A stretch of DNA of 64,000 nt, from assembly GCA_904063045.1 (NCBI GenBank), contig CAJFCJ010000002.1, positions 1,054,001-1,118,000 of the forward strand, written 5' to 3'. Origin of the DNA: Dimorphilus gyrociliatus (taxonomy: Eukaryota > Animalia > Annelida). A program made the position numbers and the translations under genes. Below are positions 5,071-13,975 of this stretch, one piece after another (positions within the stretch are counted from its first letter, which is position 1; every line of letters starts with the position of its first letter). The notes below the pieces were generated by a model. It did not search any database, was not told where the DNA came from, and was given only the letters and a program-made list of their open reading frames with translations.

Positions 5071-8000
5071 ATGATTGTTCTACATTTATTTTGCGTCATC
5101 TCTCTTCTACTTATCTACACATCTACTGCCCAAATAGAAGTTCACCGAGGAGGTAGTGTTAACTTAGACGAGGTTATTGCCGCCATCTTTGGTAATCTTA
5201 AAGGGGAGAAGGATTGTGTTTATGAAGCTGAAACAATGTACCGATGCCGCCGCATCGGCTCTATTCGACCGAAGGTAATCGTAAAACGAACGCGACAAAT
5301 GGTTTTTGCAATTTCTTATTTGTTTTCGTTGTTTTCACTTCAAAGACGTGTAAGAAATCCCCGTTGTAGAAAAATAGTATTTACACTTGCGCATATAAAT
5401 TTGTTCTTAACGGCGAACCGGGGGGAATTGATCGAATCATGAAAAGTAAATTTTCTCTCGCCCGGCCAACCGAAATTACTCTTTTCAACATTTGAATTTT
5501 GCAATTCACAGATTTTTCCATGTGACCTGACAAACGTTCGTGTGGTCTACACTCATAATGGCTCACCTTTTTTCGACCGTTTCCAAATAGAATTTAAACG
5601 ATACTCAACCAACAATTCAACAATTAACGTTCAAAAGTTTACGTTAAATTTGACTGTAATTGAACCAGTTAACTCTGTGTTCAATATCCGTCAAACACTT
5701 AAAGTCACAATTCTTAATGTTAGCAAGCCAATCGACGACACTTTCCTTACGTTCCGTTACGACTATTCTCAAATATTGGACACTTGTGATGTGGCAGTTG
5801 GAGACGAGGAATGGCCAGCTTACGGTAGCCTACAATTTCAAGGGGATTGCAAAGACTTTCTGCTTGTTTCAGCTGTTTATAATCAGACAAAACAGCCCAA
5901 TCCCGGTCTTGATTATATACCTATAAAAGCGGTTATTGAGAAAAAAGATAGTATAGCCAGTAACGAGATCTTCTACCTTCCCGTTAATATTGTTGGACCT
6001 TTTCATAATATTGCACCTGAAATTCATTGGAAAAAAGACGAAGTAATTTTAAAATCATCTTCCTCTTTCCTTCTTGACCATCACCTTCTCACCGTGAGAG
6101 ATCCGGACGGTGACGACGACCGACTGCTAGTAATCGAAGTGATCGATGCGGGAGACACCATAATTACTTTCCTCCATGCTGATGGTCAACACGTCACCTG
6201 CTTTTCAGCAGCTCAGTTAAAACGCGGTCAGATCATTATTTGGGCGCCAAGTATTCGATACGATAAGGTTGTGAAATTAAGGGCTCGAGCTAGAGACCGG
6301 TGGCTATTATCTAGTAAAATAGCAACAATTCGTATCCGAATAGACGCTTCTCCATTTCAAAGACTGGATGCGTGGGCCCAAGGTGAATTACTCGTAAGAC
6401 GGTTTGGAATTGTTACTATCAATAACCTAAAAGTGATCAGCTCGAATGAAAACGTTAGAATATACGTAAAGGCACTACCTGCGTTAGGTAGCTTATCAAT
6501 TAATCAAGAGATTTCCTTAGAAGATTTGAGAAAGGGCCGCCTTAATTATCGACACCAATCGACGTCAGAGAAATACCACGATCAAATAATCTTTACAATA
6601 TTGTCTTCGCAGACTACTAAACAAGTCATAGTATCAATTCGAATAGTTTCGTTAGAAATTCCAAAAATTCACATAATTACGCCCGATAAACCCATTAAAA
6701 TTAATGAACAGACTCGAATAACCAATCGTCATCTGTCGACTAACGAGATGGACGGGGAGGATGTTATTTTCAGAATAGTTCAGGAACCGAATTGTGGACG
6801 AATTATTAGAAAAACTAGAGATTATCAAAGTGGAAAAACGATAGTTTCCGATTTCTCTCAACATGATATTCGACTCGGTCGAATATACTACAGTCCAAAA
6901 ACAAGCATAAACTGCCATAAACGGGATTTGATTATCGTTAAGGCAAGAAAATGGTGGAATAAGGGAAAATGGTCAGTAGAAAGAAAAGTTCGCTTTAAAG
7001 TCAGAGTAAAAACAACGTCTCCCACCGATTTAATTAAAGCATATGCAGGTGCACCTGATTCGTTAGAGATTCCCGAAACACATATGGCTCGCCTTTCTTC
7101 TTTATTTTTCTATTATGAGCCATCAAATGTACTCTTTCGCATCGTCAAACAGCCGTATTTTAGCGGCTCGAATGATACAATCGACGCTGGAATAATTGCA
7201 TTAATTCACGACTTGAATGAACTTCGAAGCCGAATAAACAGCAATCTTTCCTTAGCTACTGAATTTAGTAAAAATGATATTAAAAGAAACAGAGTAATAT
7301 ATTTTCCTCCATTCGAAGATATTGGTTATGAAAAGCGATTAGTAACATTTGCATTTCAACCTTTCATTGGAAAGCATAACGGGGCAATCCGTATCATCCG
7401 GATTACCTTATTACCAGTCAATAATAAAGCACCACAAGTTATGCCAACTAAATTAGCTCTACAGCAAGGCTCTAAGATCTCCTTTAATTTAAATATTTAC
7501 GATGAGGATACCCGTGATGCTGACATTCGTATTCAACTAAGAACTCCACCAAAGGAGGGATCTGTCATATTACTCTCAAATACCTTAAAATCTGGCCAAT
7601 CGTTTTCGTTGGCCGATACGAAGAAGGGCTCCTTGATATATATTCACGACAACCGGTCATTATCGATAAGGGATCAAATTTCAATAGAAGTTGACGATGG
7701 TCGACACAAGGTAAACTCTTCTATAGACATCGATATCCAACCACATACCCATGAAATAATTAAATCTTACGCTCAAACTATTCAAGTTGAAGAAAGAGGC
7801 TCTGTTCAGATTTCATCTCTTAATATATTTAAAAAAGAGAGGCGAGTAAAGTATCGACTAATTCGTCCACCAAAGTATGGTACTTTAAACTCATCTTTCA
7901 GCCAAAGAGATATTTTAAAAGGCAAAATCCTTTATCAACACGTCTCGGGAGAGATTGGAGCCGAAGAATTAACCGACTTTTGCCTTTTAGAAGGCAAAAC

Positions 8001-10503
8001 AAAAAAACAAATTCGTCATGTCAAACTTGTTTTCGTTATTATTCCAATTGATAAGAAATCGCCTGTTATTAAAAATGCTAGTCCTCTATTTATAAATGTA
8101 AATGGAGATTCTTGCATAACAAATAATGAATTAACCGTTGAAGACCCTGACTCATTGCTAGATTATGTCAATTTCGCCATTATACGTCAACCCCGATTCG
8201 GAGCTTTATTGAAAAGGAATTTAACACAAATATTGTGGCATTTTTCATTAAAAGATATTTACGAACACCGAATTATTTACCGAACTGCTAAAGGAAACAA
8301 AGGAAGGAAAGATTCCTTTGAAATTTATGCAACAGATGGGAAAAATTATTCCCCACCTACTACGATTAATATATTGAATAGAAAAGAAACAAAAGTTATG
8401 GCCGATTCGATTAAGGGAAAATTTGTAAAAAATTCTTTTGGCCTTAAAAAGAATTCCCTAAGAGTTGTAGAAAGACGAGAAACTGCTCTAACTGAATATC
8501 ATTTGAGTATTTCGGGAGCCAGAACTATTCCAGCGGCTGATATCAAATATACGGTGACAAAAGCACCAACTCTTGGAATTTTGCATTATATAACAGATAG
8601 AGGGCGTAGCGTGACGTCTTTTACACAGGCGGATATTAATGCCCAGAAGCTGGCTTATGCACATCATTCAAAATTAGATATAAATTCTGACAGGTTTAAT
8701 TTTTCAGTTAGAATATCTAATAGTAAAGTAATAGAGGACAATTTACTAATTCAAGTAAAATGTATTGATGTAGAATTGCCGACTGTAACGGTTTTTCTAC
8801 CATTAACAGTTGGACAAGGGGAAAAGAGTAAAATAAGTAGAAAAAATCTATTTACATCGGATCCTGATACTGATTCAACTCAGATTATATATAAGATTAT
8901 ATCTCCACCGTTTAATGGACAAATTCTTGTGGGTAATGATACTGTAAAGAATAACTTTAGTCAATTTGCAATCGATAATGGAGACGTTTATTATAGAAGC
9001 GATGGTTCGGATAATTCTATTGACTTCTTCCTCCTTCACCCTTCAGACTCACACAATTTAGGGTTTCTGCGCAACGAGACTGTAATGAAAACATCACTCT
9101 TTTTCACAGTACTCATTCAGCCACCAACTGTGTATGTACCTGTCATTCGCAATAAGATCCCCGATAAGATTCAATACTTTGACAAATATAGAAAGTATGG
9201 GTTTTTAATATCTGATTCATACTTGAAAGCTGATAGTATGGATGTGACATTTTTAATTCATTCCACGACTACGCAAGGTTATATTTATGATCTTAAGGAA
9301 AAGAGCAGAATTTTTAATAATTTTACTCAAAAGCAAGTTGATGATGATCAAATAGCTTTTCTACTCAATAAGAATACTTTAAGAACGGAAGACTCTTTCA
9401 ATTTCACAGTAATATACGGACATGGACATTCATTGCCTAATAATCAATTCAAAGTCCAATGGTCTACAGCTATTTTCTCCAAAACCAGACATATAATTTG
9501 CGAAGATGTTGGCCTATACGATATACTTATTCAACGATTAGGTAAAAACGATATAGAGGCAAATATTCGAGTGAAAGTCAAAGAAATTACTGCAAATACA
9601 TTGTCGGATTTTATACCTGTTAGTCCATCTATTGTGCATTTTGATGTAAAACAAACGGTGGCCAAATGGACAATACGAACAGTACTTGATAAAGAAACTG
9701 AAAAGAATGAAAGATTCGAATTAGAGTTGATCGATGGCGAAAACGTAGTTGTCGGATTTCGTAAAAAGGCCTCTATAGAAATTGTCAATTTTGACAGAAA
9801 AAAATGCGATGAATATATCGGTATGGTGACATCTTTGTCGAAATACGAGAATGAAGCGATACCGCGAACAACCAGGAGCCGATATAAGAAACGACATAAG
9901 AAGCTCAAAAGGAGAAAAGAGAGAAGCGGAATGGTAAATTTAATTTTTGTTTTCTTGATCTCTTGCTTAATTTTTAAATTTTCACAGAGCTGTGGGCGAG
10001 ATTCACTTAATTTCGTAAAATTAGATGTGAAAACGTCAAAAACGTTCAGATGCAACGGAGTTGAATGGGAAGAATGGAATAAAGAGCTTGATTCCCAACA
10101 AAGAAATGATCAAGTGACAATGACCTGTCCATTCGGTTGGATAAATCAAATAAATGGCGCCTGTTACAAGGTCTTTCGAAAACGACTCAATTGGATTGAC
10201 GCAAGAAAAGAATGTGCGAAAATTGGAGGAGAGTTGCCCAGAATTAGGAACCATAATCATCTAGCTCGATTGCTTACTTTAATGAAAAGACCTTTTTGGA
10301 CTTCTATTAAATATATTGAGGGCCGTTGGGTATCAATTGGAGGTAAATCGGTGAATTATCTTCGGTGGAAAAGAGGATATCCTCGTAAGCATAAGAGGAG
10401 AAGGCTCCCTAAAACTTGTGTACAAGTTGACGGTCGGGGACAAATGGTAAATCGTGTATGTAATGGAAGATCATATTTTCTTTGTTATCAAAAAGCAGCT
10501 TAA
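5071..10503 (+). CDS. FREM1: FRAS1-related extracellular matrix protein, FREM1-like (CSPG/cadherin-like repeats, Calx-beta, C-type lectin)
   Basis: Signal-peptide exon 5071-5274 splices to 5511 (RPK|IFPCDLTNVRVVYTHNGSP). Repeated F(S/T)QxDIxxGxxxY CSPG motifs, Calx-beta (FDVKQTVAKWTIRTVLDKETEKNERFELEL) and terminal CTLD (CPFGW..CY..NWIDARKEC..C). Probable intron at 9934-9987. Confidence 0.85.
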
Positions 10504-10716: not shown

Positions 10717-11777
10717 TCACAAAACAGTAATTTGACAGAGCTCCTCCCCGCTTTCTACATTATTATTTTCATTAGAGGGACGCCGCTCACGATCGTCTAC
10801 TGGCCTCCATAAGTTATTTTTCGATGTTTCTTCTGTGTCGTCTGCAGTATTATTTTCCGTCTCTCCTGGTTCTTTTCGCCGTCTCTTTGAACCAATAGCT
10901 ATAGGAACTCTGAGTGACTCTGATGTAGTTTCTGATGCTTCTTCTTCTTCTATAATTGGTTCGAAAATTGTTGTTTTTGTAGTTGATTCTGATATTTTTC
11001 TATCATTGACAATTTCGTTGGGGCTTGTTCCATCCTCTGAACCATCGTCACTGCAAGAATTTTCACGCTCCTTTCTAGGCGATGTATTAGGCTTATGATG
11101 CCAATGAAAGAGGTTAGCAAGAGACATACGGCGATTCATATTTGAATGCCGGCGCTTGTCGTGACCTTTCCCAAGAGCTACAGCAACCATCGGAATGATA
11201 CTCTGCTTAAGATTTCTATATTGCTCTCTTGCTGTTTTTTCTCTTAGGTTAGGAAGCTCTCTCATGTACTTATCAATAGCTTTCTCGTCCAAGTATGTCG
11301 TGTAATCCGTACGTTTCTAAAAAGAACATAATAAAAGTATTCACTTTATAAAATCATAAGTACCAATAATCAAGGAATTCAAATATTTGCTTGACTGCTG
11401 TTGAAAGCTTAAAAATCGAAAGGTTAGAAGCTGCGGGCTCGTTCGACCAGCTGCATGTACACGTTTTTAGAAGCAGAAAAATCTATACACAGATGTCTAA
11501 CTATATTCGACGAGGAAAGATAAATGATTATTTAATGCAGTTGACCGTTTCAAATTACCTTAATATGACTTGCTATTAGAAGAGTGATAGATAGAGTATA
11601 GGTAAATAAAACGGCGACGACGTAATACATGGCTCCGGAACTATCCTGCTTTTCTTCGTTCCTCTCCGTAGAAGTACTAAAGTTCAATTCTACACCGGAT
11701 GATTGATCAAATGATAAAAATCCATTCAATGTTTCATTCCTATCATTCGTCAACCAAAAGCGGTACTTTCCTGCCAT
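10717..11777 (-). CDS. Single-pass type III membrane protein A, KCNE-like, 272 aa (exons 11559-11777, 10717-11316)
   Basis: No signal peptide. N-glycosylation sequons NET and NFS, then TM YYVVAVLFTYTLSITLLIASHIK. A phase-0 intron joins the two ORFs in frame. C-terminus ITVL. Clear paralog at 13302-13975. Confidence 0.75.
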
Positions 11778-13301
11778 TTTTATTCTTAACAACCACTGCA
11801 GACTATATGTGCGCTTCTGTCAAAGCGAATTTATATTTTCGTTGGCAATATCCGGCGGCGGAGTTTTAACCCTTTTTTCGTTCCGATCTTTTCTTTACTA
11901 CTGCAAGAATTTAACCAGTGACAATTGTAAATTATACTAACACAATGGCATAAAATCAGTCAGCGCGAGAGTTATTTATTGCGCTTAATTACATCGAAAC
12001 TCCTGGAACGTTTCAGTCGTCGCCAAACCGCTTAATTTCGCATGTCGACTACTTTTTATACCTTTTCTGTTTCTATTTTTTTTTTTGCACTTTTCCCTTG
12101 AGTCTTTAAACTGGCACGCTAACGAGCGGCTTTCAATCGAAGCAGAGTCAGTCCCAATCGCTGTTTTTCTCCTAATCACAGACGGCGTTTATAGCCCGTC
12201 TCACAGTGCATCTAAAGCGTCTAAGCGTTCTAACAGCCTTGCCTTCCTTTATAAAGTCTACGCATGAATATGAAACCATTGTTAAAGTTTAATAAATGAT
12301 TTTTCCATTCATGTGTTTATTCTTAAGTAAATATAAAATTAATATACCAGTTAATCTCCAAATATATGAGGTCATATGAATGATATCCGTCTCTTCTCCT
12401 TTTCTAAAGTCGACTGGTGGCGCTAGCTATTATTTAACTTCAGCTAGATGGCGTTCTAATAGAATTGGGACGAAAATTTTTTTCAAATGAGGGGGTTTAG
12501 TATTATAAGTACATAGAGGATTTTCTGAATCAATCAAGTGGATTGAAAAATTTCTAAAAGTTCCATACAGACCAGGTATAATCCTTTGTTATTTATTACT
12601 GATCAATCAATCGTCTGATTGGAGAAAAACGATAAAAAGATATTCTCTCTCTGTCTAATCTCAATAATTGAGGATTATAGGCGAGAGGGTAATGCCAGAG
12701 TAAATGTCATTGACTGTGAGCGCATTTTTTTCTTCTCTCGACGCCATTCGGATCGTTTAGCAAACGTCTCGCAAGCAAAATATTTACCGAAGGTCGAGTG
12801 GATCTCAATACCTTTTTGTCTCAAAACGGTAAGTTGACGCAACCTATAAACTTCTTAACGTTGAGCAAACAATCTGTTTAGACAGATTTATTTTAAATAT
12901 ATCGATCAATGATAGTTCCACTGCGAATACGCTTGTAAAAATTCTATAAATAAAGAGATTCTTCACTCTTTAAGCTGCTAAGTATGCCGTAAAGTATCTA
13001 CAGCATGTAGACGATAAGCTGTTCATATACTAAGCATTCATGAATTCTAGCGCAGTCTGCTATATGATTCCTAAAAAAATATTCTTTGTATATATGTTCA
13101 GGTGGTGTTTGAGGATATTCCATACTTTGATATATAACAAAGTTCTTTATTTTTTCCTTTAGAATTACCGAAATGTTGAATATAATTATTTTAATAAGGA
13201 TATTGAGTTCATAGTGACGTTGCTAAGTAGACAGTCGCCTCGAGTTTCTACGAATAAGAGCCACCTGTTTTATTGCACACGATAGTATTCGAAATTGAAG
13301 A

Positions 13302-13975
13302 ATGAGTCTGGTAGAAGGCAAGCATAGAATAACGCTAACGATTAAGGATAAGGATAATTCATCATTTAAAGGCCTACTTTTTATCACTAATTCATCAGAG
13401 AATTCAACACCTCTGCCCACTCCTTATGATCAAATTGGTGCATCGGTAGGATATTTCATATTCTAAACTAAGTGAAAGTAATAGGGAGTTTTAAGTCGGA
13501 AAGGGCGGGATTTAATATATTATTAATATGCAATTATAAACAATTTATTTCTCCTCTACAGTCATACGTAATTGCTGTTGTACTTGTATATGGTTTATCA
13601 ATTGTCATGCTCATTGCATCTCACATTAAAAGAAGGCATGATAAAGCCATGGAAGATAGGCAAATTGAAAAGTATATACAAGCGGTTCCGAATCTTAAAG
13701 AGAAATCGGCAAGGGACACTTATAGAAATCTAAAGAGATCTATTGTTCCAATAGTAGCAGTGGCTTTAGCCAGTTCGCCAACATTACCAAAAGGTACACG
13801 AAATAAATTTGCGAATTTGACTTTTACTCCTCTACCAAAATTTGTCATTCATCCTCCGGAAAGTGAACATCGAGGATCTCTAGACAGCGGGAAGTGTTCA
13901 CCTTCTATATCGTTATCCACAAAATCATTACTTCATGAAAATGAAGAGTGCATTGACGTAACCACTGTGGTCTAG
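13302..13975 (+). CDS. Single-pass type III membrane protein B, KCNE-like, 185 aa (exons 13302-13445, 13562-13975)
   Basis: MSLVEGKHRITLTIKDKDNSSFKGLLFITNSSENST...GAS|SYVIAVVLVYGLSIVMLIASHIKRRH. Phase-0 116-nt GT-AG intron. Homologous to gene A in the N-terminus, TM and post-TM helix. Confidence 0.75.

Follow-up and report, generated by a model that had tools for sequence, protein, structure and literature searches.

Canonical KCNE genes (KCNE1 to KCNE6, the MinK/MiRP proteins of Pfam family PF02060) are expanded in vertebrates and were not found in invertebrates (PMC13516689), for which the literature searched here reports KCNE proteins in the form of the nematode MPS proteins alone (PMC13516689, PMC4210162). 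The latter, MPS-1 to MPS-4, are MiRP/KCNE-like single-pass subunits of KVS-1 with about 80 to 260 residues and a disordered cytoplasmic domain (PMC4210162). Because canonical KCNE is held to be absent from invertebrates, the KCNQ and Kv channels of these animals have been studied as if they lacked such partners. Here we analyzed a 64-kb stretch of DNA from the annelid Dimorphilus gyrociliatus (C2:1054001-1118000, where C2 is the contig), which we call the window and which consists of AT-rich eukaryotic DNA with short introns. Two head-to-head genes in it, A and B, encode predicted membrane proteins that an earlier note, made from the DNA letters, had read as KCNE-like. Positions are those of the window unless a contig or locus is given.

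As judged from profile searches, A and B belong to a large, unnamed family of predicted single-pass membrane proteins whose named members are annelid and mollusc. We put the probability at about one half that A and B are scaffold-tethered accessory subunits of a channel-helper type, whose partner is most likely an ion channel, with a voltage-gated potassium (Kv) channel as the leading candidate. The channel-helper role is inferred from resemblance to KCNE and MPS. Like KCNE1 to KCNE6, the family is predicted to be small, single-pass and oriented with the N-terminus outside, to lack a signal peptide and to have a short glycosylated ectodomain, and its most conserved parts are the membrane helix, the basic stretch behind it and the helix that comes next. 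KCNE is also its nearest neighbor in a language-model look-up and supplies weak but top-ranking matches in PDB and Pfam. With the MPS proteins it shares the invertebrate single-pass build, and its nearest language-model neighbors include a nematode cluster. There are also differences. No family member reaches the PF02060 cut-off among the matches listed, and the MPS-4 family PF17523 gave E 0.057 for just one Dimorphilus paralogue, L017. The family proteins have a predicted N-terminal beta-hairpin with an invariant N-glycosylation sequon and a D-x-x-G-A motif, unlike KCNE, and many of them carry tails of 200-600 residues with a conserved PDZ-type end.

The two genes lie within 10717-13975, where the earlier note had placed them, and each has two exons. 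We searched the exons of A and B singly and used the deposited proteins DgyrCDS1144 and DgyrCDS1145 as the spliced products. The spliced models equal these entries: gene A is DgyrCDS1144 (272 residues, from exons of 73 and 199 codons) and gene B is DgyrCDS1145 (185 residues, from exons of 48 and 137 codons), with both second exons 100% identical to the deposited protein across the full exon length. The term unrecognized, used by the earlier note, must be qualified in that both genes are already annotated, as hypothetical proteins. A and B share 56% identity across 41 residues (E 5e-16), and on this alignment they are clear paralogues, as had been proposed. The intron sites differ: that of A follows the membrane helix, and that of B precedes it. 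A family model built from 87 sequences matched the four exons of A and B (E 1e-12 to 1e-32) and nothing else in the window. The sequons, the single membrane helix, the conserved helix behind it and the two C-terminal ends that the earlier note had described are all present in the translations, and their positions are as follows.

11559-11777, minus strand: gene A, exon 1, residues 1-73, encoding the ectodomain and the membrane helix (family model E 7.5e-22)
11730-11738 and 11676-11684, minus strand: gene A, sequons NET and NFS, respectively, from the translation
11562-11630, minus strand: gene A, membrane helix, from the translation
11317-11558, minus strand: gene A, intron of 242 bases, GT..AG, phase 0, immediately behind ..SHIK, where the helix reaches the cytoplasm
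10720-11316, minus strand, with the stop codon at 10717-10719: gene A, exon 2, residues 74-272, encoding the post-membrane basic stretch and helix and a tail that is disordered, acidic, rich in serine and terminated by ITVL (family model E 1.7e-12)
11173-11316, minus strand: gene A, conserved post-membrane region, residues 74-121, aligned to B and containing conserved family columns
10720-10731, minus strand: gene A, class I PDZ-ligand-type end ITVL, from the translation; related ends recur throughout the family
11778-13301, no strand: intergenic region of 1.5 kb between the divergent start codons, from the gene geometry, presumed site of a promoter that is bidirectional or shared by A and B
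13302-13445, plus strand: gene B, exon 1, residues 1-48, encoding the ectodomain with the predicted beta-hairpin and the sequons
13323-13385, plus strand: gene B, predicted beta-hairpin (AlphaFold2 strands 8-15 and 21-28)
13356-13364, 13389-13397 and 13401-13409, plus strand: gene B, sequons NSS (conserved in the family), NSS and NST, respectively, from the translation
13446-13561, plus strand: gene B, intron of 116 bases, GT..AG, phase 0, just upstream of the membrane helix
13562-13972, plus strand, with the stop codon at 13973-13975: gene B, exon 2 (family model E 1.2e-32)
13562-13627, plus strand: gene B, membrane helix, from the translation
13628-13771, plus strand: gene B, cytoplasmic helix, followed by the disordered tail
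13961-13972, plus strand: gene B, class I PDZ-type end TTVV, from the translation

The extent of the family was determined with a profile made from A, B and two relatives (alignment A1), which we ran against 1.84 billion cluster representatives. The profile matched 482 representatives at E<=1e-3, 172 at E<=1e-10 and 24 at E<=1e-30. B itself, scored against this profile that contains it, gave E 2.4e-52, and independent members scored as low as E 5e-50. Most of the matching proteins are 350-700 residues long and align merely over their first ~120 residues. A word-based protein search returned little beyond one close relative, because its length window hides the longer kin. Scanning family members with Pfam assigned no family to them, among the matches listed, and in these scans no other named family fits A or B better than KCNE. 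The named members come from Capitella teleta, Paralvinella palmiformis and Mytilus and are all called "hypothetical"; P. palmiformis was the one species name that cluster look-ups of the matches gave. As the few named members are all from annelids and molluscs, these two groups are the proven range of the family.

In a tree of 87 domains, A and B were unresolved at the base of a clade of 42 rows with a Shimodaira-Hasegawa-like approximate likelihood ratio (SH-aLRT) support of 99, in which P-x-L-K-E-K follows the helix; the branch leading to A is long. Both proteins carry the hairpin sequon, the D-x-x-G-A motif before the helix, S..IAS[HF]I[KR] at the helix end and K-Y-[LIM] after it. To the family as a whole, this locus adds a long-tailed, PDZ-ended branch and the sole head-to-head pair among the family loci of the genome.

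A sequon precedes the helix in all of the 103 complete N-termini (103/103), whose median ectodomain is 60 residues long, and 89 of the 103 contain at least two sequons. On average, the 12 residues that precede the helix have a net charge of -1.7, and the residues behind it one of +2.2. The charge asymmetry and the sequons together fit an N-terminus outside and a C-terminus inside the cell, and the predicted topology of the family is one helix with an outside N-terminus, no signal peptide and a short, probably N-glycosylated ectodomain. An AlphaFold2 model of B, made with 55 family rows, contained two strands (8-15 and 21-28) that form a beta-hairpin and have the sequon of N19, which is nearly invariant, at the turn between them. 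Residues 44-118 formed an unbroken helix with a predicted local distance difference test score (pLDDT) above 90, and the tail behind it was disordered. A search of the ESM Atlas by shape with this model gave no TM-score as high as 0.5, and for a hairpin and one helix such scores are uninformative; the Atlas's own structure rows for A and B were likewise uninformative.

Within the membrane helix nearly every column is conserved (more than 2.3 bits). Among 19 diverse members, D43, G46, A47, V54, I66 and S68 (numbering of B) are invariant, and N19, I62 and Y86 are nearly so. A lone helix that is so conserved probably makes specific contacts itself, which fits a partner embedded in the membrane. 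The C-terminus is conserved as well: of 127 members with long tails, 66 have [ST]-x-[VLIM] as their last residues, as compared with 3% in the background. Typical ends are ..QITCV, ..QITCL, ..QITVL and ..HVTSL, and the conserved form is ..[IV]-[ST]-x-[VL]. Many of the long-tailed members that have no PDZ-type end appear to be gene calls that were cut short. From its conservation, the end may serve to tether the proteins to PDZ scaffolds.

Taken together, these features would be explained if A and B were expressed-type paralogues that work as single-pass membrane glycoproteins. They would insert without a signal peptide and with the N-terminus outside, where the short beta-hairpin would bear the conserved N-glycan. 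The chain would cross the membrane once, through the helix conserved at almost every position, and this helix would extend beyond the membrane on the cytoplasmic side, where it is long, basic and amphipathic, before the disordered tail terminates in a class I PDZ ligand. The membrane helix and its flanks would pack against a multi-pass partner, for which an ion channel is likeliest and a voltage-gated potassium channel the leading candidate, and the tail would tie the partner complex to PDZ scaffolds. A and B would then work like KCNE/MPS-type accessory subunits that have an anchoring tag in addition. The tethering part of this mechanism has a parallel in the TARP/stargazin subunits of the AMPA receptor, membrane accessory subunits whose class I PDZ tail ties the complex to a scaffold. 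TARPs are claudin-like proteins with four membrane helices, and they have no sequence or fold relation to the family of A and B, so that the analogy is one of mechanism only.

Besides the A/B pair, other members of the family are present in the Dimorphilus genome, which holds at least 11 family loci. Among them are short members of two kinds, the X-type and the Y-type; the A1 profile reaches the X-type at E ~1e-15. The loci outside the window, each identified by a family match, are as follows.

C2:727903-731109 (C2:729k), convergent: X-type and Y-type pair
C11:165043-168246 (C11:166k), convergent: X-type and Y-type pair
C20:1416393-1419572 (C20:1416k), convergent: X-type and Y-type pair
C9: further Y-type member
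C14:984.7k (L012:2177-3190): divergent member
C2:333443-333784 (L017:1444-1785), plus strand: L017, the most divergent paralogue, which lacks the N-terminal hairpin motif

Since the convergent X/Y arrangement recurs, the two genes may have been duplicated jointly, or there may be a reason for which they stay together. The Y-type proteins end in ..YDYV or ..FDFV, and ..ETDV, the end of Shaker-type Kv1 channels, also terminates the second exon of one X-type member. The C14 member runs into a stretch of N, either masked sequence or a gap, and its C-terminus is thus unreadable. L017 is linked to the X-type members by BLASTP (7e-8) and by matches of up to 30 bits, and against the A/B profile its match is weak, with an hhalign probability of 54%.

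A more specific explanation than the channel-helper reading is that A and B represent a true, highly diverged KCNE/MPS lineage, in which case this type of subunit would predate the protostome-deuterostome split and would tune KCNQ/Kv channels through its helix. We consider this explanation less likely than not. It is supported by the language-model look-up, in which the clusters nearest to both proteins were labelled ISK_Channel (PF02060), with 0.94 and 213 of 256 shared features for B and 0.89 and 189 of 256 for A, of which the N-terminal part was used. The nearest clusters comprised chordate KCNE4 and KCNE-like proteins and one mollusc cluster, all ISK_Channel-labelled, as well as the nematode cluster, and other single-pass families were further away (SRTM1 and C10orf105 at 0.83-0.85, TMIE at 0.79). 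A chain of similarity leads to the same family, from the A/B profile through the X-type members to L017 and from L017 to PF02060. The best Pfam match of L017 is ISK_Channel, with 17.7 bits (E 0.003), below the cut-off of 22.1 bits for PF02060; MPS-4 (PF17523) follows at E 0.057, and KCNE1 chains are its sole PDB matches (E 0.14-0.25). By these matches, L017 is the most KCNE-like member of the genome. When a cropped superfamily profile that included L017 was compared with PDB, the top match was KCNE2 (2m0q) at E 0.039, which is below threshold, with KCNE1 at 0.42-0.73, and the KCNE2 alignment spans the pre-helix motif, the helix and the post-helix region. The KCNE1 helix that the earlier note had quoted agrees with the text of the KCNE1 chain in the PDB search output. 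Potential partners are encoded as well, as KCNQ-type genes exist in the Dimorphilus genome at two loci (C1:356k and C12:1056k).

Other results weigh against KCNE kinship and, to that extent, against a channel-helper role drawn from it. The earlier note had named a profile match to ISK_Channel as a check of its proposal, and for A and B no such match was obtained. The four exons had no PF02060 match at E<=10 in the Pfam scan, and a six-frame search of the genome with PF02060 found nothing at the family loci, those of A and B included, and one unrelated match at E 0.83. The same was found for 65 relatives: PF02060 was absent among the families matched by the 55 members scanned (in the best 25 of 67 matches), and 10 further members had no match to it. 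MPS fared no better, since PF17523 matched neither A nor B and gave nothing at the family loci in a search of the whole genome, and none of the family matches contained the triplets HSD and DFG, which MPS-1 is reported to have. When the A1 profile, a full-length profile (A2) and two single members were compared with PDB, no KCNE chain was retrieved.

The links that do exist are all sub-threshold and largely rest on the hydrophobic helix, and obvious false positives score as well or better. Spurious Pfam matches were as strong or stronger, LMBR1 reaching E 0.001 in 9 members and tetraspanin 0.0008; LMBR1, tetraspanin, DUF6249 and NDUFC2 are examples of the noise-level matches in the Pfam scans. 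The KCNE2 alignment requires a gap of four residues within the helix. Without L017 in the profile, NDUFB11 came first (E 0.05), with KCNE2 at 0.097. The proximity of KCNE in the language-model look-up may reflect a common architecture and not descent. In addition, we know of no description of an N-terminal hairpin or a PDZ end for KCNE.

NDUFB11 (ESSS) deserves a comment, since its match is oddly specific: the family shares with this subunit of complex I a pre-helix Y-D..A and F-G-F-S-I-V-L in the helix, at E 0.05, and in the PDB searches with cropped profiles its E values ranged from 0.05 to 0.15. NDUFB11 is a single-pass accessory subunit of the mitochondrial inner membrane. The match, however, covers ~35 residues, and the family of A and B has PDZ ends and, at the far side of the helix, N-glycosylation sequons. 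We took it as a gauge of the noise level and rejected kinship with NDUFB11, the match being probably due to chance.

Because NDUFB11 outranks KCNE2 once L017 is left out, and because spurious Pfam matches are equally strong, we consider common descent with KCNE, as distinct from membership in the family, possible but less likely than not. The KCNE-like reading of the earlier note stands for the architecture, which is conserved across a large family, and not for the profile match.

One exon of the C1 KCNQ-type gene (L015:3192-4460, minus strand) covers most of S1 through S6 together with the pore motif TIGYG and the beginning of the C-terminal helix, and the first half of S1 is encoded in an upstream exon. 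A complex prediction with four copies of this single-exon S1-S6 product (L015:3609-4286, minus strand) and residues 8-100 of B scored 0.00 in a run made without controls, which speaks neither for nor against binding.

A different possibility is that A and B are scaffold-tethered single-pass adaptors or receptors unrelated to ion channels, for example adaptors in sorting or polarity, or subunits within the complex of a transporter or receptor, and that the likeness to KCNE is a convergence of architecture. The strongest features of the family, namely the PDZ end, the long disordered tail rich in serine and proline and the glycosylated hairpin, are generic to many single-pass adaptors and would suit this explanation, and the Pfam and PDB searches, which suit it too, tied the family significantly to no channel subunits. 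The near-complete conservation of the helix and of D-x-x-G-A, on the other hand, points to a tight fit with a membrane-embedded partner, and the KCNE clusters are nearer in the look-up than those of SRTM1, C10orf105 and TMIE. We consider adaptors of this kind unlikely. Still less credible, to the point of being improbable, is self-assembly of the serine- and histidine-bearing helices into homo- or hetero-oligomers (A with B, X with Y) that form a pore or a phospholamban-like regulator, because the small or polar residues that suggest it (the invariant S61 and S68 and the common H69), the recurrence of family genes as neighboring pairs (A/B head-to-head and three convergent X/Y) and weak Vpu-type Pfam matches in two members (among the matches listed) are offset by the noise level of the Vpu matches, by the weakness of gene pairing as evidence for binding and by long tails and PDZ ends that are untypical of small pore-formers.

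The channel-helper reading of A and B has consequences beyond this locus. A family with a KCNE-like build and a docking tail provides concrete candidates for co-expression with invertebrate KCNQ/Kv channels. It is conceivable, although we would not favor it on present comparisons, that the family is the protostome counterpart of KCNE and MPS, with A and B as its PDZ-tailed branch and with helper subunits already present in the bilaterian ancestor. If so, annelids and molluscs would have diversified long, scaffold-anchored forms, and at least 11 such genes would have been kept in one of the smallest animal genomes. If the channel role holds, the origin of this class of regulators would move to the early bilaterians, and direct PDZ anchoring would be added to their modes of action. 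Even with a partner other than a potassium channel, a family with hundreds of 50%-identity clusters, a near-invariant helix and no annotation deserves a name and a test.

A close relative, with 83% DNA identity throughout, retains the order FREM-like gene, A, B, NFI. At this level of DNA identity, the kept gene order, including the head-to-head arrangement of A and B, says little. The A proteins of the two animals are 85% identical and the B proteins 60%. The segment 13777-13873 in the tail of B could not be aligned in the relative (L010:8258-8477), with the first ~90 and the last ~30 residues kept, which indicates that the tail of B evolves fast between fixed ends. Near a family member from another species (P0036), a second family member was not found within 10 kb.

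The neighbor of gene A in the window is a 1653-codon open frame at 5542-10503 (plus strand). Its product is a FREM1-like matrix protein, in which Frem_N and six Cadherin_3 (CSPG-type) repeats are accompanied by a C-type lectin domain at the C-terminus. The frame begins in the middle of the protein, so that upstream exons are expected. The FREM1-like gene converges with gene A, and the stop codons of the two are 214 bases apart.

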